From positions 186,001 to 250,000 of the IMG/VR virus record IMGVR_UViG_3300044680_000280: a stretch of DNA of 64,000 nucleotides; one strand, given 5' to 3'. The notes under the pieces were generated by a model. That model was not told the origin of the DNA. It saw nothing but the letters and a program-made list of their open reading frames with translations, and made no database searches. Within the stretch, counting starts at the first letter, position 1, and the number at the start of each line of letters is the position of its first letter. Positions 15,626-62,089 of the stretch are shown here, in pieces. The position numbers were made by a program, and so were the translations under genes.

Positions 15626-15650
15626 GGAGACTTTCGCCCCCACTACACCG

Positions 15651-16553
15651 TCAGACAGTGTCGATGAACTCTTTGAATTCTTCCGTATCGACCGTATCCG
15701 ATGAATCGGTCGAAACACCGTCACTGCCATCTTCGAGGCCTAGCTTCTCTCGAAGCTGAGCGGTCGTGATGACCCGGTACGGGTTGATCTTCTTGTAGAA
15801 CTTGATGGCTCTCTCGAGGATCTGCTTCTTGAGGTTTTCGCTCTGAAGCCACACGGCCTTGCCGTCTGCCGACGGTTCGATTTGCTGGTACTGGTCGTCC
15901 TTGCACTCGAGGAGTAGATCCTGATTCGCAATGGACAACCCGTTCTTGCGCAGACCCGAATTGACCTTCCAAATCAAGTCGTATCTCTTCTGAGAGAAGC
16001 GCCACGGCTTGATGATCGGGTCTTTGATCCAGGACGACTTGAAGACATCCTTGTCGAGCTCCCCCTCCTTGTTGGAGGGGTAAATGAGAAGGAGAGTCAC
16101 GAAGTGCGTCTTCGCTTCCTCGATTTTGCTCCAAAGCTTGTCAGCCTCGGGCCCGTCTTTGCCCATACGGGAGATGATGTCACCGACACCCTTGCCCACA
16201 AAGTGGTGGGTGAACTTCTTGAAGTTGGGCGCATTGAGGTCGAGCTTGTCGACCTCCGTGAGCTGGTCGACGCTCTTGTTCAAGGCCGCTGCCCGGTCGG
16301 ACAGAGCCTTCTTGGCAATGGCGATCTGCTCTTCCCGTGTAGGCTGGGCCGTCTTGGCTTTCGAAGCTCGATTGCGAGCCTTGAGGATGGCAGCCTCATC
16401 CACACTCTGAAACAGGAGGATGGCTACGCGGTCCGTCCTGTTTTTGGTTCCCTTGTACCAGTCGACGTCGTTGTCTGACTTTGCGGCTTTTCGATCTTCG
16501 TCGTCGAGCCCAAGACTGGAGTCCAAGTCATCATACTCGTATTCGTCACTCAT
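15651..16553 (-). CDS. putative single-stranded DNA-binding protein (gp32-like)
   Basis: Acidic termini, size and position in the recombination cluster. Confidence 0.55.
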   Translation of the reverse strand: MSDEYEYDDLDSSLGLDDEDRKAAKSDNDVDWYKGTKNRTDRVAILLFQSVDEAAILKARNRASKAKTAQPTREEQIAIAKKALSDRAAALNKSVDQLTEVDKLDLNAPNFKKFTHHFVGKGVGDIISRMGKDGPEADKLWSKIEEAKTHFVTLLLIYPSNKEGELDKDVFKSSWIKDPIIKPWRFSQKRYDLIWKVNSGLRKNGLSIANQDLLLECKDDQYQQIEPSADGKAVWLQSENLKKQILERAIKFYKKINPYRVITTAQLREKLGLEDGSDGVSTDSSDTVDTEEFKEFIDTV

Positions 16554-16672
16554 AACTGCTCTCCTTAGTTTCTCCGATTCCGACAGGTAGTGTCCAATTC
16601 AGGACTGGGTCGGTTCAGAGGTTTTTGTTTTGAGAATGTCGGTGCTATACACCGACGCCTTTAACTGTCTAC

Positions 16673-17560
16673 TCAAAGAGTATTGAGAAAATCTGCGAGC
16701 TCGTCGTCCTCGTTGGGGGTGCCTTCCTCGGTTTTAGGTTCAGAGTCAGATTGGGCAAGAAATGCGCTAAATTCGTCGTCCTCAGAAAGCTTCTCGACCT
16801 CAGCGGGAACCTCCACAATGGGGGTCGCGTCCTGGGGGCGCCACCCATTCCGCTTGGGCATCGATACCCCGTGGGTCTCTGATCTTTTCCGCCAATTGTC
16901 GGTAACAATCTCCGCCACAATCACGTCCGCTTCTTGGGGTTCGGAGGACACCGTTAACTGCTTAGGCTCCGGTTCTACCTCTTCTGGAAGGCCTTCGACC
17001 ATCAACTGGGCGATGTCGTCATCACTCAACTGCTGCCGTGGTCGACGCCCCTCTTTGACCTCACCCAAGCTCGGACGCTCATCCCCGTACATGGCTCCGG
17101 TCTCGTACTCATCCCGAATCAAACCCCGCTGGGTCTGAATCTCTCGCATCGTGTCCTTGAGCTCACGGTGACGTAGTTTCACCATGTCCTCAACGTGCTC
17201 AAGATCGAGCTTGTCATTCTCAAGGGTGACGATCTCCCGATGCTCATCCTTGAGCATCAAGTTGACTTGAGCCTCCCTATCCTTGATGTTTGGAAGATTG
17301 CGAACCGCAAGGTTCTTTGCCAAGTACTCATCAGCGACGACCTTGAATAAGGCCTGTTTGCGCCGCAGCTCCACGTCAATCACCATCTTGGCACGGCGAA
17401 CCTCATTCAGGAGATTGACCACATTGTTCGTGTAATTTCGACACGTGGCAATCATGTTCTGAAGATATGTCGGACCGAGTACCACGGGGTCGCTGGCGAG
17501 TTCGATTTCAAGCTTATCGCAGGCATCCAGGATCGCCTTCATCCTGTCTTGGGTCATCAT
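16673..17560 (-). CDS. coiled-coil protein with acidic tail, possible recombination mediator
   Basis: Long helical N-half, acidic C-terminus, next to SSB. Confidence 0.45.
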   Translation of the reverse strand: MMTQDRMKAILDACDKLEIELASDPVVLGPTYLQNMIATCRNYTNNVVNLLNEVRRAKMVIDVELRRKQALFKVVADEYLAKNLAVRNLPNIKDREAQVNLMLKDEHREIVTLENDKLDLEHVEDMVKLRHRELKDTMREIQTQRGLIRDEYETGAMYGDERPSLGEVKEGRRPRQQLSDDDIAQLMVEGLPEEVEPEPKQLTVSSEPQEADVIVAEIVTDNWRKRSETHGVSMPKRNGWRPQDATPIVEVPAEVEKLSEDDEFSAFLAQSDSEPKTEEGTPNEDDELADFLNTL

Positions 17561-19782
17561 AGCGCCCTCACTACACCGGCTATGACATCCTCTACGGCCT
17601 CATTGATGGACGGTGCGAAAAAGGTGTTTCTTTGGACAACCTTGTCATTCGCAATGGCACGTAAAATGGCCGTGCTCTCCCCGAGTAGCCAGACCTTTTT
17701 CTTAGCCCGTGTGATCGCCGTGTAGAAGAGATTCCGCTGGAGCATTCTACCCTGTCCTCGAACGACGGGCATGATGATGGTATCAAACTCAGATCCCTGA
17801 GACTTGTGAACTGTAATGACGTAGGCGAGCCGCAACATTGTTGCCGCCCGCTCCTTCGGAATGTTCACGTAAGTGTCCACGGATCCAGGACCGACCCCAT
17901 GGATCTGAACGCAGAGGTGGTCTCGCTCAATGTTTCGAAGCTTACCCATGTCCCCGTTTGAAACGTTCAGCGAGTAGTCATTCTTGACTACCATAACACG
18001 ATCGCCCGTCCGAAACGTGGTCTTTCCGGCCTTGTACTCTCGGCTGAGTTCCGTCAAGGGATTCAACTTCTCCCTTAATGCTTGATTCAAGTTGTGAACC
18101 CCAACGGTCCCATCATACTTAGGAGAAAGTACCTGAAAGTTCGCGTCCCGACTCTTGAGCTTCACCGCCATCGCAACGACTAGGCCAACGATCTTATCCT
18201 CGTCTCCAACCTTCACGAACTGGAATTCCTCCTCGGGCTTACGATTGTCCAACTGGGGAGACTCCCCCTTGTACACACGGTGAGCGGCGAGAACAATAGC
18301 GCTTTGCTCGGACTGTCGAAAGACCTGGGTTAAACGAACGTGAGGAATGGCAGAGGACGAAAGAAGCTCGCGAAGAACGTTTCCCGGTCCGACGGATGGC
18401 AACTGGGCGTCGTCCCCAACAAGGATTAGTAAGGTAGATGGGTGTAGGGCATCGAGTATGCGATAAAAGAGCTCCTGGTCCACCATGGACATTTCGTCAA
18501 CAATGACCGCACCCACCGAGTACTTGTTTCGGGCGCTGAACTCCCAGGACTTGCCTGTCCACCCGAACGCACGGTGAATGGTCGATGCTGGCTCCCCGGT
18601 GACCGCTGAAAGCCTTTTGGCGGCAATGCCAGTAGGAGCCATAAGTAGGAAGCTGATGCCCGTCTGCTTGAATAGGCGAACCGCCGCACGAATGAGTGTG
18701 GTCTTCCCCGTACCCGGCAAACCCGTGACGGCCACGACATGGTTGTCTATCAACTTTGTGATGGCATATCTCTGGGCGTCCGAGAATTGAATATGGTTAC
18801 CCCTCTCGTACTGCTCGATAAACCCGTGAATATCGATCTCAATCTTCGAGGGGGTCATAAACGAAGCCAACTTGCGAGCCCCGTCACGTTCATAGAGGTA
18901 CATCTCTGGCAGGTACACTCCAACGTTAGGGTCCACTCGCACGGAATGAGTCTCCTCGAGTCGGAGAATGGCTGAGGCAAGGTTCTCTTGAAGATTCTTG
19001 GACTCAAAGCCCGTAGTATCGGACATCAGAATGTCTCTCAGACGCTCCGCAAAGTCAGCCCTACGAACAAAGAGATGTCCTTGTTGAGCTTCGGTCTTGA
19101 GGACCCAGAAAACAGCCCCATCATACCGACGGGGGTCTGTCATGGGGATACCGATCCGAGAGGCGAGCCGATCCGCCTTGGAGAAGTCGAACCCATCGAC
19201 CGCCACCAATCGATAGGGGTTATCAGCGATGAGCGTAATGGCTTCCATTCCAAATCGAGCAAAGATGTTCCGTATAACCTCCTCGGAGAGTTCGTAGTCC
19301 TTCAAGAAGATGGACAGGTTGTTCAGAGAGCAGGCTTCGGTCCACGAGAACAAGGCATTCTGCGCCACGACGTTCTTCAAGTCATTGTCCGGAAAAAGGG
19401 CCATCACCTCCCCGTGGGCGGACGTAAGCATTTCATACGTCTCGGTACCGAACGTATTGACGATCTTCTCGACGACCTGAATGTCCTCGAATCCGTGAAT
19501 GCACTCCGATAGGAATCTCTGCACCCCGTAATCGTGCGTTACGTACGGAAACCAACCGTACATACGAAACTGACGACCGTACTTAGGGTGGGTCACCCAG
19601 TCACCTACGAATTGAATCGTGATGCCAGTGGACACCTCCCGAAGACCGTACAAACTGCCTGTTACGGTAACGTTCCTACCCTTACTCGTGGCTGGCTCGG
19701 AATGATCAACTTCAAACGAGAGAACAAAGAAGTTGTCTCCCTTGTGAATGATACGACCGACGGTTCCGTAAATGCTCGGCAT
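17557..19782 (-). CDS. recD2: RecD2-like SF1 helicase
   Basis: HPKYGRQF, NPYRL, GLPGTGKT, DEMSM, GDDAQLPSVGPG, TVHKSQGSEF, YTAITRA. Confidence 0.93.
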   Translation of the reverse strand: MPSIYGTVGRIIHKGDNFFVLSFEVDHSEPATSKGRNVTVTGSLYGLREVSTGITIQFVGDWVTHPKYGRQFRMYGWFPYVTHDYGVQRFLSECIHGFEDIQVVEKIVNTFGTETYEMLTSAHGEVMALFPDNDLKNVVAQNALFSWTEACSLNNLSIFLKDYELSEEVIRNIFARFGMEAITLIADNPYRLVAVDGFDFSKADRLASRIGIPMTDPRRYDGAVFWVLKTEAQQGHLFVRRADFAERLRDILMSDTTGFESKNLQENLASAILRLEETHSVRVDPNVGVYLPEMYLYERDGARKLASFMTPSKIEIDIHGFIEQYERGNHIQFSDAQRYAITKLIDNHVVAVTGLPGTGKTTLIRAAVRLFKQTGISFLLMAPTGIAAKRLSAVTGEPASTIHRAFGWTGKSWEFSARNKYSVGAVIVDEMSMVDQELFYRILDALHPSTLLILVGDDAQLPSVGPGNVLRELLSSSAIPHVRLTQVFRQSEQSAIVLAAHRVYKGESPQLDNRKPEEEFQFVKVGDEDKIVGLVVAMAVKLKSRDANFQVLSPKYDGTVGVHNLNQALREKLNPLTELSREYKAGKTTFRTGDRVMVVKNDYSLNVSNGDMGKLRNIERDHLCVQIHGVGPGSVDTYVNIPKERAATMLRLAYVITVHKSQGSEFDTIIMPVVRGQGRMLQRNLFYTAITRAKKKVWLLGESTAILRAIANDKVVQRNTFFAPSINEAVEDVIAGVVRAL

Positions 19783-19795
19783 GCCGAGCAAGCCT

Positions 19796-21697: not shown

Positions 21698-21851
21698 TCC
21701 TTGACTTATACACCAACCGCGTGCTAAAGTCACGGTAATCCGTTCTCGGCTCACGATCCAATGGCCGCACGGGGTTGTCTAGAGTTCCGGATCGGGTCAT
21801 AGACGGCGGGGGCTACGCCAAGACTTTTGGGTAGTCCCCCGTATCTTTGGT

Positions 21852-25770: not shown

Positions 25771-25981
25771 TGGCTTCTCCCTCAGCCAAAAGGTGCGGTC
25801 TCAGAGGGGGCACTTCGACGAGCTGCATTACGAGCAAGTAATTCGTATTGCATCGCTCACAAATATGCCGGTGGGGCTCTGTACCACTTGGCTGAAGGCG
25901 TCCTCTACACCGAGAACAGGCCATCAAACTTGTCGGGTTATCGTCAAGCACCGGTGGGTCAGATATCAATGTGTCCGCCAA
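25742..25981 (-). CDS. small zinc-ribbon protein
   Basis: CSRC...CERC. Confidence 0.6.
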   Translation of the reverse strand: MADTLISDPPVLDDNPTSLMACSRCRGRLQPSGTEPHRHICERCNTNYLLVMQLVEVPPLRPHLLAEGEASAVGRCGTT

Positions 25982-26629: not shown

Positions 26630-28595
<1,966 letters not shown>

Positions 28596-28970: not shown

Positions 28971-29801
28971 CTACACCACTTCGATGTGTTTGACCTTTAC
29001 GTCCGAGGGCTTGAACACGGCAACTTCCGGAACCCCATCAACCAAATCCGAACCATAATACACGACGCAGTCGTACCCCTTGGAACGGGCTCCCTTCGCC
29101 TGGGCCTTGCTGGACGTGACCAAAGTGTTGTGGACCAACACGGAAACGGTATAGACCTTCGGACGATAGGACTTTGAGTCCAATCCAACCTCATCCAGAT
29201 AGTTGTACAAGTAGTCGGGAGCCCCCGTGCTCGTACTAAACAAAGAGAGGCTGGCATCGTCCATACCCAGAGGGGTTATTTTGCTCCCTATGATGTAGCC
29301 AGCAATGTCGTTCAAGGTGTTCGGGTCGACCTTGAGCCAATTCTGGAATCCAACAGAGTCAAATGTACCCTGACCGGGAGGAGGATTGTCGTTGATGAAT
29401 CCAACCTCTTTGGGATAGTTGTTCCAAGCGTCTGTCCCCTCATCGACTAAACGCTGTAAGAACTCGCCGGCACGTGGATTCTTTTTCTTCATATCGGCAA
29501 GGATCATCTCCTTCTCAAAGCCGATGTTACGATTGGCCTCAGCATACTTCACCGCCACACGCTTCGACGGAGTCAGGAAGATACCGTCCCCGTAAAAACG
29601 GTCGACGAGCTCCTTCCGTGACTTGTCAATTTTGAATGTGTGGAAAAGGCGGGTGGTTCCGTGATACAGCGTGACGGAACGATGCTCGAGCAACCCCTGG
29701 AGATTGTACTCCGCCAGGTTGAGCGTTTTCCTCGCAAAACGATAGGCGATCCGCTCTTGAGCGGCGTACCGATGAGCTACTCGCTGGGCGATGGTCGTCA
29801 C
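28971..29801 (-). CDS. ADP-ribosyltransferase-fold protein
   Basis: LYHGT, GDGIFLT..KYA, GYDCV..EVAVF pattern of phage ART-like domains; probable GTG start. Confidence 0.6.
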   Translation of the reverse strand: MTTIAQRVAHRYAAQERIAYRFARKTLNLAEYNLQGLLEHRSVTLYHGTTRLFHTFKIDKSRKELVDRFYGDGIFLTPSKRVAVKYAEANRNIGFEKEMILADMKKKNPRAGEFLQRLVDEGTDAWNNYPKEVGFINDNPPPGQGTFDSVGFQNWLKVDPNTLNDIAGYIIGSKITPLGMDDASLSLFSTSTGAPDYLYNYLDEVGLDSKSYRPKVYTVSVLVHNTLVTSSKAQAKGARSKGYDCVVYYGSDLVDGVPEVAVFKPSDVKVKHIEVV

Positions 29802-29824
29802 CCCCAAGCAGGTTGAAAAGACCT

Positions 29825-30379
29825 TTAGCCGAGACGTGAGCCGTCTGGAACCCCTGGGCACGAAGCGAGGATGACTCGACCGTCCTCCGACTGGGCCGCG
29901 ACAAGCATCCCGTGGGATACTTGACCCATCATCTTACGAGGCGGTAGATTACAAACGGCGATGACCGACATGCCGACAATGTTTTCGACCGTGTAACTCT
30001 TGGCAATACCAGCCAAGATGGTGCGCGACCCCTCCGAGCCGAACGAAACCATGAGCTTTAGGAGCTTGTCACTCTTAGGTAACTCATACGCGCCCGTAAC
30101 CGTCCCCGTACGAAGCTCGACCCGCTGAAAAGTAGCAAAGTCGACGAACCCGTCTTTTAGGTCGGGCTGCTCGTTTTCTTCTTCCTTGTTCTCGTGCACT
30201 GCCCGAAGTCCGCCCGCGAAGCCGTTCACCTGGTCGCAGAACTCCTGTTTTTGCTCCGGAGTTGCACTTGCGAGGAACGCTCGAAAAGCGTCCGCAACGG
30301 GCGTCTTACTGCAAGTGGGAGCCTCCTCGGTGGAAGGAACGGCGCCTGCATTTTGATTGGTTGTGGAGCCCATGTTCAC
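29825..30379 (-). CDS. Trbp111/CsaA/MetRS-C-like tRNA-binding OB-fold protein
   Basis: FQRVELRTG, SDKLLKL, RTILAGI, NLPPRKMMGQVSHGM. Confidence 0.88.
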   Translation of the reverse strand: MNMGSTTNQNAGAVPSTEEAPTCSKTPVADAFRAFLASATPEQKQEFCDQVNGFAGGLRAVHENKEEENEQPDLKDGFVDFATFQRVELRTGTVTGAYELPKSDKLLKLMVSFGSEGSRTILAGIAKSYTVENIVGMSVIAVCNLPPRKMMGQVSHGMLVAAQSEDGRVILASCPGVPDGSRLG

Positions 30380-31340: not shown

Positions 31341-31474
31341 GCCCTAGCACTACACCACCTAAAAGCGCGACAACCCGTGAAAAAATGCTTTTTTCACAAG
31401 CTGTGGAAAACGTTGGGAGAAAATGGCTCTTGACGAAAACCCCCATCTAGGAAAGAGTCGGACAAGGAGGTGTT

Positions 31475-32294: not shown

Positions 32295-33932
32295 TCACCA
32301 GCTCTTGCGAGACTGCTTCTTGGACTTTTCTTTTTTACAGACGTGTTTCGCTTCGTGTGTTGGGGACGGGTCAGGTTCAGAGTGGGCCGATGGGTCTACA
32401 CCGAAGAAATCGAACGAACTAACCGGGGTAAGCGGAGGCATCCCGATGGTCAAAGTTCCGACACCGGGATCGGGTATGAATGATTGCACCATATGCAGCG
32501 GAGGAGACGGGTGCACCATCATTTCCACGAATGTTTCTTGAATGGCTGGTTGAACGATCGCTGGTTGAACAGTAACTCCAGCGAACGCGTTGGACGTGTT
32601 CGTCGTGGTCGTTGTGTTCATTTGGACCCCGAGGTTCGCGAGGTCGCTATCCGCACCGCCCGCGTAGCAGGAAACCCCAAGACCGCGCGAAGCCCCGTTC
32701 TGGAAGCTCCGTAGGTAACTGGCGTTCTGAACGTACTTGTCCGCACTGTCGACGCTAGAACCGAGCTTCCTGGAGACCGCCGCAAGGCTCAGAAGACCCC
32801 GCGAGCCGAAATCAGCGGCTTTGGCCGCCATGATGTCAGCGGCCGCCTGATAGGAGCCCTTCTTGGCGGCTTCCTCAGCTTCAATTTGAGCTCGAACAAG
32901 TTGAGCCAATCCAACGATGGCGTCGAGACTGGGATCCGGTTTCGACTCGAGGTCCTCCTTGCGAACGAACTGAGCCTTAACCTTGGTCTCTTCCGTGTGA
33001 TCGTGCTTCTTACCTTGAGCGTCGAATGTTTGGTACGTTGCATGCAAGTCGAAGACATTCACGGCACGAGGACCGTGGGTCTTCTGCTTGGCGAGTCGAA
33101 CCGCAACGACAATGTGACGAGCCTCCTCAGCAAGAAGGTCAGGGATCTGGATGTGAACCTCCCCCGTGCTGTCGTTGTCGTCCACGTCAACGTCAGAAAC
33201 GACCGAATTAATGACGTGTCCGCTTGTGGGCTTCAAGTAGAGGTCAATGTTTGTCGCGTAGGTCGAGATGAGTCCGCCGAGTTCCGTACCGAACGCCTTG
33301 AGAGCTTTGTCCGGGTTTTCGACATGGGCGTAATTACCCTTCCCCTCCCGAGCAAACTCCGTAAGAAGATTAGAGTCGAATTCCCCCTGTGTGTTGGAGC
33401 CATACCCGAAGGCACTGCACGTGACGTGCTCACGGTTCGACGTGAGTAGATTAATGATGTCCTTACTGGTCTTCGCGGGACCGACGTTGGCCGCGCCGTC
33501 CGTCAACATGATGACACGGTGAATGTAGTCTCCGCCGATATCGAGCGCCTTGAGTAGCTCGAGACTCATGAGTAGGCCGCCCGAAAAATTCGTCATGCCG
33601 TCCGCCTTGAGTCCGGCAACAACCTTTCTGAGGGCATCCTTGTCTCTGACCCGAGCGGGGGCGAACGCCGTGCTCGCCTTGGAACCAAAAGTCACGATTC
33701 CAAGAATGTCGTCGTGCTTCAGATGCTCGATGATCTTGAGGGCACTCTGCTTGACGTACTCGAGTTTCTCACCCGCCATAGAGCTACTGACGTCAACACA
33801 AAGAACCATCGCCAGCTTTGGGCGAGTCTGTTCAACGTCAACCGGGGGAGCCGTCAGACTGACGACAAGGTGGGTTGTGTTTTCATCATCGAAATGGAAT
33901 TTGTTGGTGACAAGACGTGCTTCGAGTTTCAT
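32295..33932 (-). CDS. vWA domain protein
   Basis: MIDAS DVSSSM, TNF, MLTDG. Confidence 0.85.
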   Translation of the reverse strand: MKLEARLVTNKFHFDDENTTHLVVSLTAPPVDVEQTRPKLAMVLCVDVSSSMAGEKLEYVKQSALKIIEHLKHDDILGIVTFGSKASTAFAPARVRDKDALRKVVAGLKADGMTNFSGGLLMSLELLKALDIGGDYIHRVIMLTDGAANVGPAKTSKDIINLLTSNREHVTCSAFGYGSNTQGEFDSNLLTEFAREGKGNYAHVENPDKALKAFGTELGGLISTYATNIDLYLKPTSGHVINSVVSDVDVDDNDSTGEVHIQIPDLLAEEARHIVVAVRLAKQKTHGPRAVNVFDLHATYQTFDAQGKKHDHTEETKVKAQFVRKEDLESKPDPSLDAIVGLAQLVRAQIEAEEAAKKGSYQAAADIMAAKAADFGSRGLLSLAAVSRKLGSSVDSADKYVQNASYLRSFQNGASRGLGVSCYAGGADSDLANLGVQMNTTTTTNTSNAFAGVTVQPAIVQPAIQETFVEMMVHPSPPLHMVQSFIPDPGVGTLTIGMPPLTPVSSFDFFGVDPSAHSEPDPSPTHEAKHVCKKEKSKKQSRKSW

Positions 33933-38738: not shown

Positions 38739-39104
38739 TAGTGGACCCGCCGAGAATTGAACTCGGGTCCGAAAGATCGTCCTGATCACCCTCGTTACGT
38801 GCGTAGTCGGCTTGAGGCAACCGACGGCCTTGCGGGAAATGGGTGAGTTGACCCGCGTCTCAGCAACCTAATGTGTCCCCAGCTCACCGATTGCGAGGTG
38901 GCTGTATGCCTCGTGTGGGTTGACGACCCGTTGTCCGATACTCGAAGTCCTCTCGGACGGGTCGCCGATCAGGCCGCGATGGCGAGATCGGGGATGCCGT
39001 TGTCGTTGGCTGGTGTTTTCGCCTCGATTTGATTAAGCCGGGTCGAAGGAGCCCGCCTACACGCAGATGGTCGTTCTGTTCCTCCGTCGAAACCTGTCAG
39101 GCCC
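38739..39104 (-). ncRNA. ssrA: tmRNA, tag (A)ANDNGIPDLAIAA
   Basis: 5' GGGCCTGACAGGTTTCGAC; tag ORF ANDN...LAIAA*; 3' T arm and G3:U70 Ala acceptor. Confidence 0.93.
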
Positions 39105-39170
39105 GTACTGGTCAGATGAAAGATGATGCCGTGTCTTGAGATCCTATAGTACACCGGACGGAGGTGAAAG

Positions 39171-43206: not shown

Positions 43207-43256
43207 ATAAATGGTATGGTGTTTGTTATCTACCCTTATGGTGTAGATAACAAACC

Positions 43257-43770: not shown

Positions 43771-44037
43771 TTAGTTGAGAGAGGGATCCTGCCACTTGCT
43801 CTTGCGATACTCCCGGAGGCGGACCATTTCCTTCTGGTACTCTTCCTCGGCGAAAGGCACGCACGTCGTCATCTCGAGTCTCCGGGAGGTCGGCATCTCT
43901 TCTCGTAGCTTGTGACGGGCGGCGACCTCGGCTCCCTCCGTGGAATCCGCGTCGACCCAGGTCGACGGCGAGACTGTCTCATTGACAACCCCGGCTCTAC
44001 GCTCGAAGTGCTCGAAGGAAACCCAATAGTGTCCCAT
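43771..44037 (-). CDS. hypothetical protein
   Basis: 88 aa, divergent from 44054 across a palindromic spacer. Confidence 0.7.
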   Translation of the reverse strand: MGHYWVSFEHFERRAGVVNETVSPSTWVDADSTEGAEVAARHKLREEMPTSRRLEMTTCVPFAEEEYQKEMVRLREYRKSKWQDPSLN

Positions 44038-44056
44038 GGTGTATCCTTACACCATG
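44035..44056. promoter_or_regulatory. palindromic back-to-back GGTGTA promoter pair
   Basis: CATGGTGTA-TCCT-TACACCATG between two divergent ATGs. Confidence 0.7.
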
Positions 44057-44948: not shown

Positions 44949-45090
44949 GAAAGTCCACTTACACCGATACCGTGTACACGTACACGGAAAAAGAGGTCAG
45001 GGCCGAAGGATGCGACATGGGGCAACCGTCTCGTACCGGTTCCACGTAAATCAGCCTCCACGGGCACCGAGAAACCATGCCACTGACCAG

Positions 45091-52968: not shown

Positions 52969-54834
52969 TCAGGAAGCCCAAACGGGCTTCTCGAGTAGTT
53001 TTGTACGCAAAATTTCGTCAATCAGTGTCACACGAACGACAGGGGTCGACCGTGTTGTTTGTCCGACCGGCGTCGAGCTGACGAGAGCTCGAATCGTACG
53101 AGGAATCGCGTACGGATCCGCAAAGATCCGTTCGTCGATCATGAGACACGGAATTCCGAGAGCCGCGGCCGCACTCGTAATGGCCCCGTAGTTCTCTCCC
53201 GGCACTTCCAGCCACCCGAAGGCGACAGGATTGATGCCCGTGGTTCGAACGGCCGAAACGAACTTCGTCACGTCGCGCTCCCCACCGTCGCCGACGAAAA
53301 GGAAAATGGCATCCTCGTCAGCCCCGGGCTTCAGGTCGTTGAGCACTCGAACGCCCTCCGAGTGCAAGGTGCCGCCGTTTGCCCTGATGTTGAGGAAGGC
53401 GTTCTCGACGCCCGCCGTCGACGGATGACGAATGGTTACGATTCGTCCGACCGTGTTGAAGACCACGACGTGCAGTTTTTCGAGGGGAAACCCCTGAAGA
53501 AACCGACTGATGTAGGTCTTCGCGACCTGGATCGAAGTGTGCATCGATCCAGAGATGTCGACAATGACGTAGATGACGAGGCCCTTGACCGCCGCTGCGA
53601 CTTCACGTTGAAGCGCCTGGTCGGACGCCTCGACGAGCTTCTCAGCAACCTCTCTCGACTTGACGCGGAGGGCAATGTTCGCCGCCCTCATGTCCGTCGC
53701 CGTCTTCATCGCCTGCTCCCAACGAGCCTTGACCGTGGAGTCCTCGAGCAGTCCGAGCTCCTCGATCGTCGGAGTCAAGATACGAATGTCCTTGTCGGAC
53801 AAAGATCCGGCCTCGATGGAAGCCGCCATGATGGCGCGCGTGATGCCCATCTTCGGGGGAACGAGACCGCAGATGCGCTTGTAGTCGGGTCGATCCTTGA
53901 GGATGCGTTGGCAAATCTCGACTTCCGTCAGACCCTCCCACGATTCAGCGGGAGCAACATCCTGCCCGATGCGCATGACGCGGCGACCGTCCTTCGCCTG
54001 AGCCTGCTTCCAGCGAAGGATCTCGAAGAACGATGGCTTGGCGGGACGGTACCCGACGCGCCGAGCGAGCTCCATGACCGTTCGACGGTAGCCCTTTTTG
54101 ACGAGGCCCTGAAGGAGCTTCGGGTTTTCCTCGCGATAGAGCAGCCACTTGGTGACCGCCTTCTCCCAACGACCGAGGAAGGGAGTCCGCGCCGACTTGC
54201 CGAACCCAAGCTCACGGTTAATCGCCGCGACCTGGGGAAGCGTGAGGATCTCGTAGATGCGAACGAGGTCCTTGGCTCGGAGCGCGTGCTCGTCCTTGCT
54301 CGAGTACGTCAGAAGCATCGCCTCACCGACGTCCCGGAAATCTTCGTCGTGGAAGAGAACCTTCCCACCGTCGACGATCGGGTCACCCTTACGGTTTTGG
54401 ACGAGCATGAACGCCGCGAGGATGTCCTTGAGGTCGCGGTGCTCCTTGGTGAACTGGTAGCTCGCCCAACGTGCGGCGAACTCACTGTCCAGCTTCCAGA
54501 CCTCGGCGACCTGGCCATACATCCACGCAACGACCTCGGGAAAGAGCCCCGCCGGACGGTAGTGACTGACGACCTGACCGCGTTCGTTCCTGATCTCGCC
54601 GTTCTCGGCAAGGATACCGACACGAACTTTGACCGTCTTTTTGCCAGCCTTGTCGAGGCGATAAACGACCTTTTGCCCGTCTTCGACCTTGTGCGTCACG
54701 GGCTCCCAACGAACGCCGACGTTGAAGCGCGCGTCCGGAACGATTTGGCCCGGTCTGTTGTGCACCGCGTGGTCTTGGTACGTCAAAAGGGCTTGGATGA
54801 TTCGATCCGCTGCTCCCAGGTTTTCGTTGTTCAT
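52969..54834 (-). CDS. TROVE/Ro60-like helical domain plus C-terminal vWA
   Basis: vWA MIDAS DISGSM, GGT, VGDG; helical N-region with MELARRVGYRP and SWE recalling TROVE motifs. Confidence 0.6.
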   Translation of the reverse strand: MNNENLGAADRIIQALLTYQDHAVHNRPGQIVPDARFNVGVRWEPVTHKVEDGQKVVYRLDKAGKKTVKVRVGILAENGEIRNERGQVVSHYRPAGLFPEVVAWMYGQVAEVWKLDSEFAARWASYQFTKEHRDLKDILAAFMLVQNRKGDPIVDGGKVLFHDEDFRDVGEAMLLTYSSKDEHALRAKDLVRIYEILTLPQVAAINRELGFGKSARTPFLGRWEKAVTKWLLYREENPKLLQGLVKKGYRRTVMELARRVGYRPAKPSFFEILRWKQAQAKDGRRVMRIGQDVAPAESWEGLTEVEICQRILKDRPDYKRICGLVPPKMGITRAIMAASIEAGSLSDKDIRILTPTIEELGLLEDSTVKARWEQAMKTATDMRAANIALRVKSREVAEKLVEASDQALQREVAAAVKGLVIYVIVDISGSMHTSIQVAKTYISRFLQGFPLEKLHVVVFNTVGRIVTIRHPSTAGVENAFLNIRANGGTLHSEGVRVLNDLKPGADEDAIFLFVGDGGERDVTKFVSAVRTTGINPVAFGWLEVPGENYGAITSAAAALGIPCLMIDERIFADPYAIPRTIRALVSSTPVGQTTRSTPVVRVTLIDEILRTKLLEKPVWAS

Positions 54835-54939
54835 GGTTCTGATCCGATCTTCGGCGCTAGGCCGTCCTCATGGTTACACCGACCCGGTGAATGTCCAGAA
54901 GAATTTCGGGACCGAGTTGTGTCGGCGTTTACTGCAAGT

Positions 54940-55302: not shown

Positions 55303-55387
55303 TGCTCAAGAAGGGACTCGAACCCTTACGTCCTTTCGAACACAGCGACCTCAACGCTGCGTGTCTACCAAATTCCACCACCTGAGC
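55303..55387 (-). tRNA. tRNA-Leu(GAG)
   Basis: Class II cloverleaf. Confidence 0.92.
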
Positions 55388-55432
55388 ATTCGTGTAAGTG
55401 ATAAAAGGTAAGTATTCGTGTACAGTATAAGA

Positions 55433-55875: not shown

Positions 55876-55942
55876 GGACGATGATTACACCGAACGCTCT
55901 ATTTCGCCTGCGTTTCCGACTACCCCGGTGTAGTGTGTAATT

Positions 55943-56702: not shown

Positions 56703-56711
56703 AAATCTTCG

Positions 56712-56786
56712 TCCGTGTGAGAGGATTCGAACCTCTGACCCCTTGCTCCCGAAGCAAGTGCGCTAACCAGACTGCGCTACACACGG
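56712..56786 (-). tRNA. tRNA-Pro(CGG)
   Basis: Canonical cloverleaf. Confidence 0.92.
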
Positions 56787-56812
56787 GTGATACTTTACGC
56801 CGACTGAAAAAA

Positions 56813-56889
56813 TGGGAGCGGGATCTGTGTTGCACCAGAATCGCTCGGCTTATGAGACCGAACCGAGAACTATGTCTACTCTTCCCGCG
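56813..56889 (-). tRNA. tRNA-Met(CAT), initiator-like but degenerate
   Basis: CGCGGGA 5' end with 1:72 mismatch, CTCATAA loop, variant T loop TGCAACA. Confidence 0.6.
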
Positions 56890-56890
56890 G

Positions 56891-56963
56891 TGACCAGTAG
56901 AGGAATCGAACCTCTGACGCGGAGTGCTTCAAACTCCCGCTCTACCATCTGAGCTAACTGGCC
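56891..56963 (-). tRNA. tRNA-Phe(GAA)
   Basis: Canonical cloverleaf. Confidence 0.9.
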
Positions 56964-57015
56964 GTGTGTAACTTTGGTGACACCTCGGGCTCTCCCCGCG
57001 GTGTAAGAATCGTAC

Positions 57016-57639
57016 ATGAGGCTAAGAAATTGGTGGCGGCTGGTCCGCACCGTAGTGGCATTGAACGTGCTTGCGTGCCGTCCAGCTCAAGCTCCGGACT
57101 ACAATCATCAGTTCAGAAGGTTCGTCATCTACGTCGACAACGCCCTCCCCCTCAAGTGGATCAAGAAGGGTGCCGACGATTGGACAAGGGTCACGGGAGA
57201 CGTCTTCACGCTCGTTCCAACCGAGCACGAAAAGGCGATGGTGCTCTCCCTCTCAACGTGGTCCAGCGACATTCTGGTCATGGTCGACGCCAGCGAACTA
57301 GATGGTGCAATCTGCGAACCGTCGAACCTCGCGTGCTTCACGAGAAGTACGGTTTACATGTTCCCGGACAGGATCATGAAAGATCATCCGTCGCACCCGT
57401 ACTTAGGCTCCCGTTACTACGGCGCCGGCGCGAACAACGGAACATGGTCTCAGGTTCCGGCACACGAAATCGGCCACTTCCTCGGACTGGACCACATCGA
57501 AACCCGACCATCGGTCATGGGCCCCAACACGGGCGTCTCAACCGAAGCCCCAACCGAAGAAGACGGGGCACTTGTCATACAAAAGAGGTTGCATCCTCCG
57601 AAAGTGGCTCAACGCGTCATCGTAGTAAGCCAACCGTAG
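57016..57639 (+). CDS. matrixin-like (metzincin) metallopeptidase lipoprotein
   Basis: Lipobox VLAC; HEIGHFLGLDH plus Met-turn SVM. Confidence 0.85.
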   Translation: MRLRNWWRLVRTVVALNVLACRPAQAPDYNHQFRRFVIYVDNALPLKWIKKGADDWTRVTGDVFTLVPTEHEKAMVLSLSTWSSDILVMVDASELDGAICEPSNLACFTRSTVYMFPDRIMKDHPSHPYLGSRYYGAGANNGTWSQVPAHEIGHFLGLDHIETRPSVMGPNTGVSTEAPTEEDGALVIQKRLHPPKVAQRVIVVSQP

Positions 57640-57711
57640 TGACCCCAGCCGGATTCGAACCGAGCGTGCGCCCCTTGAAAGGGGGCTATCCTGCCTCTAG
57701 ATGATGGGGCC
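57637..57711 (-). tRNA. tRNA-Glu(TTC)
   Basis: Cloverleaf, bulged T stem. Confidence 0.85.
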
Positions 57712-57718
57712 AAATTAC

Positions 57719-57793
57719 TAGTGACCCCACGGGGAGTTGAACCCGCGATTGTCCGGTTGAGAACCGAGTGTCCTACCGTTAGACGATGGGGCC
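57719..57793 (-). tRNA. tRNA-Glu(CTC)
   Basis: Cloverleaf. Confidence 0.88.
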
Positions 57794-57812
57794 GTGGTGT
57801 ATCTATAAGCGT

Positions 57813-58511
57813 ATGAAAAAAGTCTACCTGGCGGGACCGGACGTTTTTTGGCCGGAACCCGAAAAGCTTGCTGGAGAAATGAAACGAATATGCCTCGATG
57901 CAGGATTCGAGGCTGTGTTCCCGCTCGACGCCACCATCACCTTTGAGAAGGATGAGTTGGGCCCGAGCAAAGCGAGAAAAATCTTCGAGGCGAACACGGC
58001 GCTCATCCGTTCTTGCCAGGGGGTCCTCGCCAACATCCAACCGTTCCGAGGTCCGTCCCTCGACGTAGGAACCGCCTGGGAAATGGGTTACGCACACGCA
58101 CTGGGAAAGCCCGTCGTTGCCTACTGGTGCGGAGAGTACGATTACAAGGACAAGGCCCTAGAATACCTTGACCTGGAAGAGAAGGACCTGAAGGACGGAA
58201 GAGACTGGGATGGGGTCCTCATCGAAGACTTTGGGCTGTCGGATAATCTCATGCCCATCTGTGGATCGTTCAAAGTGTTCGACAAACGGAGCACCGCCGT
58301 CGAGCAGATGGCCGACCTTCTGAAAAAAGAAGCTCCGTACCGATCGGCCGAAAGGGACGCGAAAGTGGCGGGTCCGAACGACCAATGCTGGATCGACCGC
58401 TACGAGATGGGAGAACCGCCGTGGTACGGACCGCCTAAGGAGCCGGATCGCATATGTGAACTCGGCACACGTGGGTGCATCATCGGTCACACGATGAAGA
58501 CGGCTACCTGA
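57813..58511 (+). CDS. nucleoside 2-deoxyribosyltransferase family protein
   Basis: VYLAGPDVF, DVGTAWEMGYAHALGKPV, NLM. Confidence 0.9.
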   Translation: MKKVYLAGPDVFWPEPEKLAGEMKRICLDAGFEAVFPLDATITFEKDELGPSKARKIFEANTALIRSCQGVLANIQPFRGPSLDVGTAWEMGYAHALGKPVVAYWCGEYDYKDKALEYLDLEEKDLKDGRDWDGVLIEDFGLSDNLMPICGSFKVFDKRSTAVEQMADLLKKEAPYRSAERDAKVAGPNDQCWIDRYEMGEPPWYGPPKEPDRICELGTRGCIIGHTMKTAT

Positions 58512-58702
58512 AAGGTTAGTGCGGTTTTGTGTCCTCCACGCTGACGACTTCGGTTCGGCAAGGACAGTCTTGAGTGGAGACCGCAAACTCGACTCATAAC
58601 CGGCTCTTGCTATCCGACGCCCGCTGCAAACGCTCCTAGACACTCGAGCAGAGAACATCAGCTCTCGAGCACGTTTCCATCGCCGTCTCTCAAACGACGA
58701 CT

Positions 58703-58776
58703 TAGAGCCCCAACTCGGAATTGAACCGAGACCGGCCGATTACGAAACGGCTGCACAACCTTTGTGCTATTGGGGC
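58703..58776 (-). tRNA. tRNA-Thr(CGT)
   Basis: Cloverleaf. Confidence 0.86.
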
Positions 58777-58783
58777 AAAAGTA

Positions 58784-58870
58784 TAGCTCCGAGAGAGGGA
58801 CTCGAACCCCCAGCGTCCTTTCGGACCTCCGGTTAACAGCCGGGCGCCTTACCGTTCAGCACATCTCGGA
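58784..58870 (-). tRNA. tRNA-Asn(GTT) with long variable arm
   Basis: CCGG-CTGTTAA-CCGG; V arm GTCC-GAAA-GGAC. Confidence 0.82.
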
Positions 58871-59200
58871 AAATAGGAAGGGTGTGTCTCCGCCCCCTTC
58901 GGGGCTTCAACACACCCGTCCCCAACGAACCCCGCCTTTACGGAGGAGCCCGTTTCACGAAACGAAACCAGGAGGGATGTCTTCCAATTCGTGATGCGGA
59001 TTGGTGGTCCGCACTTTTGAGCGCCCCGTTTGTCCCACCTGTCTTGTCGGTGGCTGGATACTATGGGCGCACGTTTTTCCTCCGACCAGAAGCATCGGAG
59101 GTATGGATGACGTTCGATTACCGTTTTCGCCGGGTCGAACTTCATCGGGTCCTGTCTAAATTTTCAAAGATCAGGAGAGCCCGAAGGCGCTCCCAATCAG

Positions 59201-59272
59201 TTCCGGGTGGAGGATTCGAACCTCTCGTAGGCGGCTTCAGAGACCGCTGTCCTACCATTGAACGAACCCGGA
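59201..59272 (-). tRNA. tRNA-Gln(CTG)
   Basis: Cloverleaf. Confidence 0.9.
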
Positions 59273-59314
59273 ATGCGTTACACGAAACTAAAATCCTATT
59301 TTACATTTGTGCAG

Positions 59315-59387
59315 TGGATCCGGAGGGAGTCGAACCCTCGACACATCGGGTAAGAGCCGAGTACTCTGGCCACTGAGTTACGGATCC
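59315..59387 (-). tRNA. tRNA-Lys(CTT)
   Basis: Cloverleaf. Confidence 0.9.
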
Positions 59388-59410
59388 ATGATTCGGTCTC
59401 ATCGACCGAG

Positions 59411-59483
59411 TGGACCCCGTGGGCATCGAACCCACAACCCTCCGGGTAAAAGCCGGCAGCTCTGCCAATTGAGCTAGGAGTCC
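59411..59483 (-). tRNA. tRNA-Lys(TTT)
   Basis: Cloverleaf. Confidence 0.9.
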
Positions 59484-59947
59484 TCTCTTTCTTTCGGCGC
59501 CGGTGTCACCGGCGCGGGCTTTTTGAGTTTCATGGGCAGTGGGTTTCCTTGAAAATGCGTGACTTTGAATTCCGTGTACTTGGAGCCGAGGCTGATTGTG
59601 GCTTGTCCTTGGACAGACACTGACGGTATTAGGTAGAGGGTACGGTCACCGGTTATGATGAACAACAGGTCGATTTGGGTGGGGTCGAAAACCTTCGTCT
59701 TACCCGTTCCGCTTTTGTTGCCACCCTTTACCCTCAGATCGGAAACCCATCCACCATAACGGTAACGGGTCGCCGTCTTTACCTGCACCTTTTGAAGCCT
59801 TCCCTGAATGTCTATGACGAGGTCGTAGTCCTGACTGTCCGTGAGGGGTATACAAACTGTGTACCCCTGCTCTGTAAACCAGCCAATGGCAATACCTAAC
59901 CCAGCATCTCCTTGCTTTTTCGAGTTCTTGTGATCTGTCAGTTTCAT
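59474..59947 (-). CDS. PD-(D/E)xK homing-type endonuclease (I-Ssp6803I-like family)
   Basis: QGDAG...GYTVCIPLTDSQDYDLVID...KVQVKT. Confidence 0.85.
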   Translation of the reverse strand: MKLTDHKNSKKQGDAGLGIAIGWFTEQGYTVCIPLTDSQDYDLVIDIQGRLQKVQVKTATRYRYGGWVSDLRVKGGNKSGTGKTKVFDPTQIDLLFIITGDRTLYLIPSVSVQGQATISLGSKYTEFKVTHFQGNPLPMKLKKPAPVTPAPKEREDS

Positions 59948-59954
59948 GTCTTCG

Positions 59955-60036
59955 TGGGGAATGGTGGAGTCGAACCACTTGCACTAGGCCACGGTGTTAC
60001 AGACCGCTAGGACTTCCACTGTCCCGAACACTCCCC
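59955..60036 (-). tRNA. tRNA-Tyr(GTA), possible 8/4 fold
   Basis: GGGGAGTG/CATTCCCC acceptor, GTGG/CCAC T stem, loop CTGTAAC. Confidence 0.8.
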
Positions 60037-60055
60037 GTGTTTTGATCCCTGAAAT

Positions 60056-60091
60056 GCGAAAGAGCCGCCGAGGTTTCCCAGGGCGGCTCTT
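60056..60091 (-). terminator. intrinsic terminator just upstream of the first tRNA (attenuator)
   Basis: AAGAGCCGCC-N12-GGCGGCTCTT-TTCG. Confidence 0.75.
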
Positions 60092-60126
60092 CAACGAGTC
60101 AAAGACTCAGTTTGCGATGCCGCCCC

Positions 60127-60294
60127 TTATTGTCCCACCTCCGGTTGGGCTAGTAAGGAGGTGGGATACATATTCGTAGGCTGGATCTTCGAAAAGTGAC
60201 GGAGGCTACCCTTCGTATCGACGACACAAGTCCCTGCCTTCGCTGATTTCAGCGATGCGCAGTTTCTTGTTTCGAGCGACCAAAGTATTGACAC
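60127..60294 (-). CDS. putative attenuator leader peptide (55 aa, all 20 amino acids)
   Basis: GGAG-N6-GTG start; stop immediately followed by GGGGCGGC, complementary to the terminator 5' arm. Confidence 0.55.
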   Translation of the reverse strand: MSILWSLETRNCASLKSAKAGTCVVDTKGSLRHFSKIQPTNMYPTSLLAQPEVGQ

Positions 60295-60380
60295 GTTGTT
60301 CTCCAAATGACCGCGAGTAGCGGGTGAAGTATGTTTATACAGCACGTGCACCGGTTGCGCAAGTGCTTTTCAGAAAAAAG

Positions 60381-61043
60381 TTAAGAGCCGATGTTCGAAA
60401 CCTGCACTTTGTTCATTCGACCCACGAACGGATTCAGTGAATCGAAGGTGATGGCCTGAGAACCGTACACCACCGCGACGGGCACGAAGGGGGTCCAAGA
60501 GCCGCCGCTGTAGGTGACCGTTTGAGCGACTCCGTTCACGTAAAACTCGAACGTTCCCGTTCCAGAGTTCCAGAACAGTTGGAGTTGGAGAGTCGCGCCC
60601 GTCGCGTAGGTTCCCGACGACTCCGAGTAGAGGACGTTCCCGTTGACGTCCGTTGCGACGAAGCCCGGACCGTTGGTACCCGAGAGGAAGATTCCGATGT
60701 ACTCCGTGGTGGGTTGAACGTTGCCAACGATAAACGCCAGACCCTGGGTGGCACTGGGAGCAATCCCCGCCGCGCAATCGACCTGAATCGACCCCTGCTT
60801 ACCGCTGAGCTGTCCAGTGAGCTCGAACTGACCGCCCGGTCCGTTTAGCTGAACGATACCCCCGGGGAGGAGCTGGGTGACGATCCACGGTCCAGGTGTG
60901 GGACTGATCGTAAAATTGGGGGACTGACCCGTCGCGATGTTGGGTACGAGGCCCGCGCTAGCTCTTCCAGCCAAGGGGAGCCCGTTGAAGCTGGTGTCAA
61001 CAATGAAACCAGCGGGTGAAATCATGAAGGGTGCGTCAGACAT
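60381..61043 (-). CDS. concanavalin/LamG-like beta-sandwich protein, probably structural
   Basis: Beta-rich; FWNSGTGTFEFYVNG pattern. Confidence 0.55.
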   Translation of the reverse strand: MSDAPFMISPAGFIVDTSFNGLPLAGRASAGLVPNIATGQSPNFTISPTPGPWIVTQLLPGGIVQLNGPGGQFELTGQLSGKQGSIQVDCAAGIAPSATQGLAFIVGNVQPTTEYIGIFLSGTNGPGFVATDVNGNVLYSESSGTYATGATLQLQLFWNSGTGTFEFYVNGVAQTVTYSGGSWTPFVPVAVVYGSQAITFDSLNPFVGRMNKVQVSNIGS

Positions 61044-61097
61044 GGGCGTTGTACCTCACCCATAGAAGTCATAAAAGTCTTTTGGCGATTCTAGGGT

Positions 61098-61748
61098 GTG
61101 AATCCTTACGATGCCGTACCCACCAAGGTAACGAAGGAGGCGTTCGAGTATCTCGAGAGTATTTCTCGAATCCCGACGACTCGTATCGCCGCCGAAGTCC
61201 CCAAATTCACGTGCAAGATCTTCAATTCCCCTTGGGATCAATTCGTTGAGTTATGGGCTCCCCGTATTTACAACTTTGTCGGAAACGCTCTAGGTCCGTA
61301 CGGAACGACCCCGAAACCCAACATCGAGCGTCTAACCGACGCCGAGCACATGGCGGGCGCCACGGCAAGTTTTGAACCCATTTCGGGTCAGGTTCGTCTC
61401 TCGACCTCGGTCGAGGGTAAAGAAGGGCAGACGCTCGAGAAGCTCACCCATGAGTTCATACACGGGTCATTGTCCCAATTCCCTGAGGGAGATCCATTTT
61501 ACGAGGAGGGGTTTGTTGATTACGCCGTGTGGGTTTTGGCACACGCGCCGTACTGGGATCCGTACCGACACTCTATAATCGATGCGGCAGCGTTCAACAT
61601 CAAAATGCGTCGAGACCGTGCCATGATGGACATGTCCGATTGGGATCGAAAGCGCTGGGCTGGCGGACTTTACGCATCGCTATCTAGAGGCCCGCTCATC
61701 GTTGCGTCACTACGTCATAAGAAGATGGAAAACAACTTCACGTGGTGA
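61098..61748 (+). CDS. gluzincin-type metallopeptidase
   Basis: THEFIHG...FYEEGFVDY. Confidence 0.7.
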   Translation: MNPYDAVPTKVTKEAFEYLESISRIPTTRIAAEVPKFTCKIFNSPWDQFVELWAPRIYNFVGNALGPYGTTPKPNIERLTDAEHMAGATASFEPISGQVRLSTSVEGKEGQTLEKLTHEFIHGSLSQFPEGDPFYEEGFVDYAVWVLAHAPYWDPYRHSIIDAAAFNIKMRRDRAMMDMSDWDRKRWAGGLYASLSRGPLIVASLRHKKMENNFTW

Positions 61749-62031
61749 CTTTGGGAATACGGACCTCCTCGATGACAAGATCCTCCCGAACAGAAAATGT
61801 GAAACCGTGAGGGTCGTGCCAGCGACCATACTTTTGACGAGCCCACTCGACCGCCTCGTCACGATAGGAGAACGCGGCAACAGGTTCGTTTGGATGCAAA
61901 CAAGCATTGAGCTTGATGAGTTGAATCGTGCCATTGTAAGCCCACGGGATACATGACTTGTAGAGGTCACGTTCCGCTGTAACCCGCTTTAGCTGGTCCC
62001 GTAGGTCAGCAATTTCCTGACTTGAATCCAT
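61738..62031 (-). CDS. hypothetical protein
   Basis: ATG 62031, 11 nt after GGTGTA. Confidence 0.65.
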   Translation of the reverse strand: MDSSQEIADLRDQLKRVTAERDLYKSCIPWAYNGTIQLIKLNACLHPNEPVAAFSYRDEAVEWARQKYGRWHDPHGFTFSVREDLVIEEVRIPKVTT

Positions 62032-62089
62032 GAGTTTAGGAATACACCGATCGACCTCCCGGTGTATGACAAACAAGAGGAGTACAATC

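Follow-up and report, generated by a model that had tools for sequence, protein, structure and literature searches.

The late promoter of phage T4, TATAAATA, is confined to the -10 region and is read by host core RNA polymerase (RNAP) together with a phage specificity factor, the region-2-type sigma gp55; its transcripts carry leaders. Other systems place a short signal close to start codons. In leaderless genes of Actinobacteria and Deinococcus-Thermus, the first T of a TANNNT box lies 12 nucleotides (nt) ahead of the start codon (PMC3160421). These genes are numerous, lack a Shine-Dalgarno (SD) sequence and coexist with SD-led genes (PMC3160421, PMC12340547). The giant phages AR9 and phiKZ use late promoters with short, strict motifs about 10 nt upstream of the start (AACA-N6-T-A/G and TATG, respectively), with a pyrimidine at -1, a purine at +1, no -35 element and more than 100 copies per genome, internal and antisense copies included; AR9 transcripts have leaders of 26-491 nt, and none of those detected for phiKZ was leaderless (PMC5312081). 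In Cluster K mycobacteriophages, the SAS repeat, a clade-specific and oriented element of 13 bp including the SD core AGGAG, is placed at 3-7 bp from the start, just upstream of many ATGs in the non-structural part of the genome (PMC3203893). Here, we describe the motif YGGTGTA, which recurs 10 or 11 nt ahead of ATG start codons in a 64,000-nt stretch of phage DNA (henceforth termed the window; bases 186,001-250,000 of the 406,734-bp IMG/VR record IMGVR_UViG_3300044680_000280; GC content 55%). The DNA sequencing runs that contain this phage are peat metagenomes.

We consider it probable that YGGTGTA forms the core of a clade-specific promoter class, as a -10-like element from which huge soil and peat phages produce leaderless mRNAs. 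With the TANNNT genes it shares a TA placed 12/11 nt before ATG and the missing SD, but the phage conserves YGGTG upstream of TA and not T at -7, and its motif is far stricter than a housekeeping -10 box and confined to the phage clade. Unlike the late mRNAs of AR9 and phiKZ, those proposed here would be leaderless, and the split beta/beta' RNAPs that both giant phages encode were not found in this phage. The T4 late promoter differs in sequence and in its leadered transcripts, and no gp55-type region-2 sigma was detected here. In contrast to SAS, YGGTGTA sits 10-11 nt away, excludes an SD (SD-like tetramers occur in the spacer at the random rate) and also precedes the gene for transfer-messenger RNA (tmRNA) as well as leadered genes. 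Each known analogue has at least one defining feature that the phage motif lacks, and in the literature we found no match linking GGTGTA to phage promoters.

The motif at gene starts

The window holds 45 copies of GGTGTA, compared with 17.3 +/- 4.3 in dinucleotide shuffles, none of 100 of which reached 45. The spaced pattern GGTGTA-N10/11-ATG occurs 14 times where 0.36 are expected and the highest shuffle value is 2. Across the whole 406.7-kb record, GGTGTA (327 copies) is the top over-represented hexamer against an order-4 Markov expectation, and 130 of these copies sit 9-12 nt ahead of an ATG that opens a long open reading frame (ORF; at least 60 codons). Spacings of 9, 10, 11 and 12 nt account for 9, 61, 48 and 12 sites, N10 and N11 together for 109 of the 130; under the same length criterion, every other spacing from 0 to 40 yields 0-5 sites. 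In start-linked sites, the hexamer is preceded by C in 72-79% and by T in 19-26% of cases, giving the consensus Y-GGTGTA. Since the spacing peak is lost in one-mismatch variants (several motif bases were varied), the sequence element is unusually strict. For an independent view, 452 genes were called with a coding-potential model made for this analysis. A motif-blind search upstream of these genes recovered GTGTA at 10 nt as its top position-specific signal (40 occurrences, 0.39 expected). In an analysis of intergenic k-mer enrichment, YGGTGTA was the sole strong motif genome-wide, and no second promoter motif emerged for motif-less genes. The 16% of the genome called intergenic contains 183 of the 327 copies; copies within coding regions lack C at -1 and have no visible consequence. 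The motif is strand-specific and oriented toward the downstream gene, and about 110-160 genes per genome have it ending 10-11 nt ahead of their start codon.

All 13 sites that had been listed for the window are present, each followed after 10 or 11 nt by the ATG of an ORF of 88-633 codons. The description of these sites as mostly devoid of an SD holds as well, with an SD-like tetramer in the spacer of only two (17572 and 44048). The sites linked to a start codon, together with the partner motif at 62061 and an additional site at 5868 beyond the earlier 13, are (lengths in amino acids, aa):

17572-17577, minus strand: CGGTGTA, 11 nt before ATG 17560; 295-aa clade-specific protein (16673-17560)
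21709-21714, minus strand: TGGTGTA, 11 nt before ATG 21697; NAD-dependent DNA ligase, 633 aa
28972-28977, minus strand: TGGTGTA, 10 nt before ATG 28961; 121 aa
31351-31356, minus strand: TGGTGTA, 10 nt before ATG 31340; 117 aa; hairpin and T-run just upstream
43240-43245, plus strand: TGGTGTA, 11 nt before ATG 43257; 127 aa
44038-44053, both strands: opposite-strand motif pair GGTGTA-TCCT-TACACC (inverted repeat); ATG 44054 (plus, 108 aa) and ATG 44037 (minus, 88 aa)
44960-44965, minus strand: CGGTGTA, 11 nt before ATG 44948; 108 aa
55886-55891, minus strand: CGGTGTA of a back-to-back pair, 10 nt before ATG 55875; 100 aa
55927-55932, plus strand: CGGTGTA of the same pair, 10 nt before ATG 55943; 173 aa
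57000-57005, plus strand: CGGTGTA, 10 nt before ATG 57016; 207 aa
57796-57801, plus strand: TGGTGTA, 11 nt before ATG 57813; 232 aa
62043-62048, minus strand: CGGTGTA of a back-to-back pair, 11 nt before ATG 62031; 97 aa
62061-62066, plus strand: CGGTGTA of the same pair, 23 nt before ATG 62090
5868-5873, minus strand: TGGTGTA, 10 nt before GTG 5857

At 44038-44053, just 16 bp separate the ATGs of the divergent pair; with both motifs active, 44035-44056 would form a fully overlapping bidirectional promoter. The GTG at 5857 heads an operon of clamp-loader-like, NusG-like, 5'-3' exonuclease and tandem-sigma4 genes. Further copies lie at a greater distance from their genes or precede a non-coding target:

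39150-39155, minus strand: CGGTGTA, 45 nt upstream of the tmRNA gene (38739-39104, minus)
10535-10540, minus strand: leadered site, 37 nt before a 91-aa gene (start 10497), with an SD between
54875-54880, minus strand: leadered site, 40 nt before a vWA-domain gene (52969-54834, start 54834)
16648-16653, minus strand: leadered site, 94 nt before a 300-aa gene (start 16553)
25906-25911, minus strand: site 135 nt before the clamp-loader delta' gene (start 25770)

A position farther upstream had also been claimed for several named genes, five of which could be located and checked. It stands for the tmRNA gene and for both vWA genes (the second, 32295-33932, at 176 nt); the RecD2 motif lies 5 nt from a TTG or 14 nt from the first ATG, and the groEL motif at 28297 falls between the ATG of the longest ORF (28315) and an internal ATG (28273).

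Ordinary SDs are in use in this genome, GGAG peaking 6-9 nt ahead of the starts of motif-less genes. SD-like tetramers precede 38% of these other genes but only 10.5% of motif-led starts, which is the random rate (12% at random positions; p = 6e-9). Of 20 starts with the motif at a distance of 14-60 nt upstream, 11 have an SD (55%; p = 2e-5), as if a leader long enough carries an SD and a missing leader does not. More generally, the same element is found 14-180 nt upstream of other genes, and an SD is usually there. Gene arrangement was informative as well: genes whose upstream neighbor is divergent are headed by the motif in 46% of cases, overlapping co-directional genes in 4% (p = 1e-11), and in many divergent pairs the two ATGs are 16-60 bp apart with nothing but two motifs between them. 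Gaps of this size are too small for separate promoters, leaders and ribosome sites. A pyrimidine occupies -1 in 84% of motif-led versus 59% of SD-led starts, and ATG serves as start codon in 93% of motif-led versus 74% of SD-led genes. A pyrimidine at -1 and a purine at +1 are the usual preference at transcription start sites, and leaderless translation depends on AUG; we read the two biases as a start-site preference and as the AUG dependence of leaderless messages. Together, these patterns point to a transcription signal as the best-supported reading, rather than to a translation signal or an extended SD.

Comparison with related phages leads in the same direction. A scan of viral contigs with the ligase as single protein found no relatives, whereas an alignment-based scan succeeded; the phage GenBank collection held no near-identical relative. 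Homologues of the 295-aa clade-specific protein (33-70% identity) occur on contigs of 125-570 kb, and the replication module of the window is syntenic in nine further loci (GC 55-67%). Five related huge phages (GC 55-67%) have the same motif and spacing, their whole records containing GGTGTA-N10/11-ATG 41, 20, 88, 27 and 6 times, compared with 3, 3, 3, 1 and 0 for the reversed pattern and 2, 5, 11, 1 and 1 for N16/17 spacing. In syntenic, one-directional replication modules, GGTGTA occurs 106 times on the gene strand versus 14 times on the opposite strand. The calls of the Joint Genome Institute (JGI) begin at motif-linked ATGs. The ligase gene has the motif in nine of ten phages: in seven, it lies 10-12 nt from an ATG that lacks an SD and agrees with the JGI start where available, and in the other two the distance is 25 and 37 nt and the leader contains GGAGG. 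Upstream of the 91-aa gene (start 10497), GGTGTA is found at the orthologous place in all ten phages, 29-106 nt from the start and within the end of the preceding gene, which uses the rare GTA codon even in genomes of 64-67% GC. At the metallophosphatase gene, four phages have the motif; the other six, in which the upstream gene directly precedes, do not. Orthologous sites also occur 86-128 nt upstream of the 300-aa gene (start 16553) in seven of ten phages and 132-150 nt upstream of the clamp-loader delta' gene in eight of nine. Finally, the tmRNA genes of three relatives have the motif 20, 15 and 113 nt upstream, and that of a fourth has GCGTGTA at 19 nt. Motif gain and loss, and an SD that appears with a longer leader, would be predicted by a promoter model and not by a translation-element model.

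Geometry and alternative readings

At N10 sites, the T of TA is found 12 nt ahead of the start codon, so that TA falls at -12/-11 if the A of ATG is +1, as had been reckoned for this window. We propose that RNAP would start about 10-11 nt downstream of the motif, so that the A of ATG becomes +1, a pyrimidine precedes it at -1 and TA occupies -12/-11. The resulting mRNAs would have no leader or at most a few nt and would be translated without an SD. Judged from their positions, the tmRNA sites would limit the start to at most about 15 nt after the motif, and the N9 and N10 genes to at most 9-10 nt. Of the initial annotation's proposal, a phage-specific promoter with a largely leaderless regulon agrees with the sequence and comparative tests, the start at ATG is suggested by the geometry, and the likeness to a sigma-70-type -10 element does not hold. 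T is found at -7 in only 22% of N10 and 32% of N11 sites, in keeping with its remark that this base is not conserved, and the sole T enrichment (54% at -6 in N10 sites) is one position off. TG directly abuts TA without the spacer base of an extended -10 element, and TTG, TTGA and TTGAC, sought as a -35 element, are not enriched upstream of the motif. Features of sigma-54 promoters are likewise missing, with no conserved GG 10 nt upstream of the motif and no GC at -12. A subset of N10 sites (e.g., window 31341-31346) has a weak TAGGGY directly before ATG, reflected in G at 40-52% at -4 to -2 and Y at 82% at -1 beside the T at -6; this could be a discriminator or an initiation-region preference.

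Genome-wide, an A/T tract is positioned 19-25 bp upstream of start-linked motifs ([AT]4 in 44% of sites versus 16% at random; TTT at -27 to -23 from the motif). It lends some weight to an initiator-type element, in which transcription would start within or just upstream of the motif, the A/T tract about 25 bp upstream would be the promoter element, and messages would carry a 16-17-nt SD-less leader beginning GGUGUA. The tmRNA and leadered sites fit such an arrangement equally well. We nevertheless consider it unlikely: the -1 pyrimidine is anchored to ATG and not to the motif, the T of TA 12 nt before the start codon has the geometry of a leaderless -10 element, and a TATA-plus-initiator architecture is not bacterial, whereas tmRNA is a bacterial feature. 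In addition, a start at ATG would put the tract near -41/-42, where the proximal UP-element subsite lies. Part of the tract is the partner motif of divergent pairs. Terminator T-runs, tried as its source, account for only a small part (hairpin plus T-run at 8.7% of sites versus 3.5% at random).

Next in standing, and improbable in our view, is an operator for a phage regulator, i.e., a stoperator or global repressor or activator site that is not a promoter core and that might be bound by a tandem helix-turn-helix (HTH) protein encoded in the window. An asymmetric motif, oriented with transcription, found at many gene starts and conserved in the clade alongside a conserved HTH protein would suit such a role. 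The exact 10-11-nt register to ATG and the exclusivity with SDs would be unexpected of an operator, however, and the divergent intergenic regions of 16-60 bp contain no other conserved element to act as the promoter.

An element that acts in the mRNA during translation initiation, either as a non-SD site for the ribosome or a factor in the manner of SAS or as an extended SD pairing with CACC of 16S rRNA, comes behind the operator and is quite improbable. In its favor are the fixed short distance to starts, the preference for ATG and the replacement of the SD at the genes concerned; SAS likewise prefers ATG and is confined to non-structural genes (PMC3203893). Yet GGTG ends 12-13 nt from ATG, whereas the SD tetramers of the same genome lie at 6-9 nt, and GGTGA, which would extend the 16S pairing, shows no spacing peak genome-wide. 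Together with the motif before tmRNA genes, these observations uphold the earlier judgment that an extended SD is the less likely explanation. Starts equipped with an SD of their own, among them those of orthologues of motif-led genes, moreover have the motif 25-180 nt away, and it is nearly absent at overlapping operon-internal genes, which still need translation signals. That the motif marks RNA processing, with a nuclease trimming polycistronic transcripts into leaderless mRNAs, fits the 30 motif-led genes located 0-40 nt behind a co-directional gene but is very improbable, as divergent pairs, between which transcription has to begin, have the motif most often, the motif is 10-11 nt away from ATG rather than at it, and its coding-region copies are without visible effect.

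Candidate readers and the host

For the proposed promoter, we favor, at lower confidence than for the promoter itself, host multisubunit RNAP redirected by a phage specificity factor or by a host alternative sigma. This proposal draws on three observations: the searches for a phage RNAP were negative, genes for NusG-like and sigma-region-4-like proteins are present in the phage, and the candidate host lineage does not use the motif as a general start signal. Six-frame Pfam searches covered the 406,734-bp record, with about 57 kb of the 463,523-bp contig lying outside it, and returned no match to the beta/beta' families Rpb2_6 and Rpb1_2, nor to the T7-type RNA_pol family in a search made without a positive control. 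No beta'-type DxDGD loop (NADFDGD) was found in a credible RNAP-like context, and the phage gave no match to the sigma region 2 family Sigma70_r2. Compared with PHROGs, Pfam and PDB, the twelve largest ORFs matched only tail sheath, baseplate, fibre, helicase and DNA polymerase proteins.

The sequence DDDGDQAVPL was considered as a beta' catalytic loop and rejected, the protein that contains it being Ser/Thr/Gly-rich and fibre-like. This 1965-aa ORF (genome 94562-100459, L018:562-6459, minus strand) belongs to the structural block, starts 12 nt past a motif and has no match in Pfam, PHROG or PDB; it is one of at least seven phage proteins of more than 1000 aa without a detectable family.

Two proteins encoded in the window are of interest as potential cofactors:

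1892-2530, minus strand: tandem sigma-region-4/LuxR-type HTH protein, 212 aa, without region 2, conserved across the clade
3468-4430, minus strand: NusG-like (NGN/KOW) protein, 320 aa, sharing an operon with the tandem HTH gene

The tandem HTH gene is located two genes downstream of the NusG-like gene in the operon begun by the motif-led GTG. Its 212-aa product has two region-4 matches (Pfam Sigma70_r4, 1.9e-15). An AlphaFold (AF2) model based on 61 sequences (pLDDT 87) contains two HTH domains. The first (residues 47-110) superposes on region 4 of many sigma factors, among them SigF, SigR, SigH and SigW (Z about 9, root-mean-square deviation 1-2 A), and the second (residues 110-194) on LuxR or region-4 domains (Z about 6). 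All structural matches of the model were to region 4 or LuxR-type domains and none to region 2. The view of the proteins at 1454-2530 as sigma-like candidates thus does not stand as worded: the 212-aa protein has region 4 but not region 2, the domain that contacts the beta' coiled-coil and recognizes the -10 element, and the 90-aa ORF has only a sub-threshold region-4 match, so that neither is a sigma factor in the defining sense. The 212-aa protein is 58-80% identical in all five relatives, more conserved than ligase or RecD2, and its family comprises 889 cluster representatives. Owing to this conservation in the clade, it stays a candidate promoter-specificity cofactor, and at most that. A distant homologue in a phage of 28% GC (L041) directly adjoins a NusG-like gene. 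Covariation of factor and motif was pursued and not borne out, as distant HTH homologues in low-GC phages (28% and 37% GC) occur without a GGTGTA start signal. A 366-aa Sigma70_r4_2 protein (genome about 395.4-396.5 kb) was also rejected as reader; it is an orphan without a homologue among 5.8 billion proteins and therefore unlikely to read a clade-wide motif.

A tentative host assignment to Myxococcota comes from the phage-encoded quinolinate synthase NadA (L026:2421-3365, genome about 398 kb), which is 65-73% identical to NadA of Polyangiaceae/Myxococcales metagenome-assembled genomes (MAGs); such MAGs make up about the top 40 of 80 NadA matches. The tag of the window tmRNA, ANDNGIPDLAIAA, begins like proteobacterial and myxobacterial tags. 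In five genomes of the candidate host lineage, GGTGTA-N10/11-ATG occurs only 1.1-2.7 times as often as a reversed control, and motif density is about 3-8 copies per Mb versus about 270 per Mb in the phage. Provided that the host does belong to Myxococcota, the motif does not serve it as a general promoter, although it may govern a small host regulon, e.g., that of an alternative sigma borrowed by the phage.

Several points weigh against a promoter for leaderless mRNAs. Two features of sigma-70 promoters, T at -7 and a -35 element, are missing, neither sigma region 2 nor a phage RNAP was detected, and we know of no sigma or RNAP that reads YGGTGTA. The start register is not fixed by the sequence, which would also accommodate a 16-17-nt SD-less leader. 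Our gene calls are home-made and imperfect, and start picking could explain part of the ATG preference. The sole metatranscriptome with the phage contributes five contigs of 174-219 nt at a depth of 2-5, none at a motif. The host assignment, finally, is based on one auxiliary gene.

The phage genome and the proposed regulon

The window contains a replication and repair module with genes for RecA, RecD2, NAD-ligase, class II ribonucleotide reductase, clamp-loader subunits and GroEL. Between 32179 and 60034, it carries 37 tRNA genes and the tmRNA gene, all on the minus strand, with small ORFs between them. The motif lies within 100 nt of few tRNA clusters; most clusters are probably co-transcribed with upstream genes. 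A 296-aa protein (28971-29861, minus strand) matches the ART-PolyVal domain (ADP-ribosyltransferase of polyvalent proteins), and its longest ORF overlaps the downstream motif-led 121-aa gene. Elsewhere in the genome, tail sheath, baseplate and fibre genes belong to a myovirus structural block at 45-190 kb, and hundreds of short ORFs occupy both strands at 200-406 kb.

The IMG/VR record carries a 'provirus' label, its 406,734 bp having been cut from a contig of 463,523 bp. For 9-10 kb past both record ends (L026:10963-20249 and L028:11172-20798), phage-like small ORFs continue and YGGTGTA-N10/11-ATG is still present; the DNA flanking either end contains no host genes. Given these ORFs and motifs beyond the ends, the trimming looks like an artefact, and the true phage genome is likely at least 463 kb long.

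A more far-reaching version of the promoter reading can be put forward as a tentative possibility: YGGTGTA-N10-ATG may define an undescribed promoter class common to a clade of soil and peat phages of 0.25-0.57 Mb that possibly infect Myxococcota. It would be read by a non-canonical factor, e.g., the tandem region-4 protein with host core RNAP or an unrecognised phage polymerase, and would drive the largest known leaderless regulon of any virus, about one quarter of the genes.

If the promoter reading is true, YGGTGTA would provide a simple rule for locating transcription units and true start codons across a clade of uncultured huge phages whose genes are mostly unannotated. Its short, strict DNA target would make the search for a new promoter-specificity factor testable, with the 212-aa protein, the NusG-like protein and host RNAP as the components to examine. 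It would also mean that a phage can run a quarter of its genes leaderless alongside SD-led ones, which would raise the question of whether the phage biases host translation toward leaderless messages.

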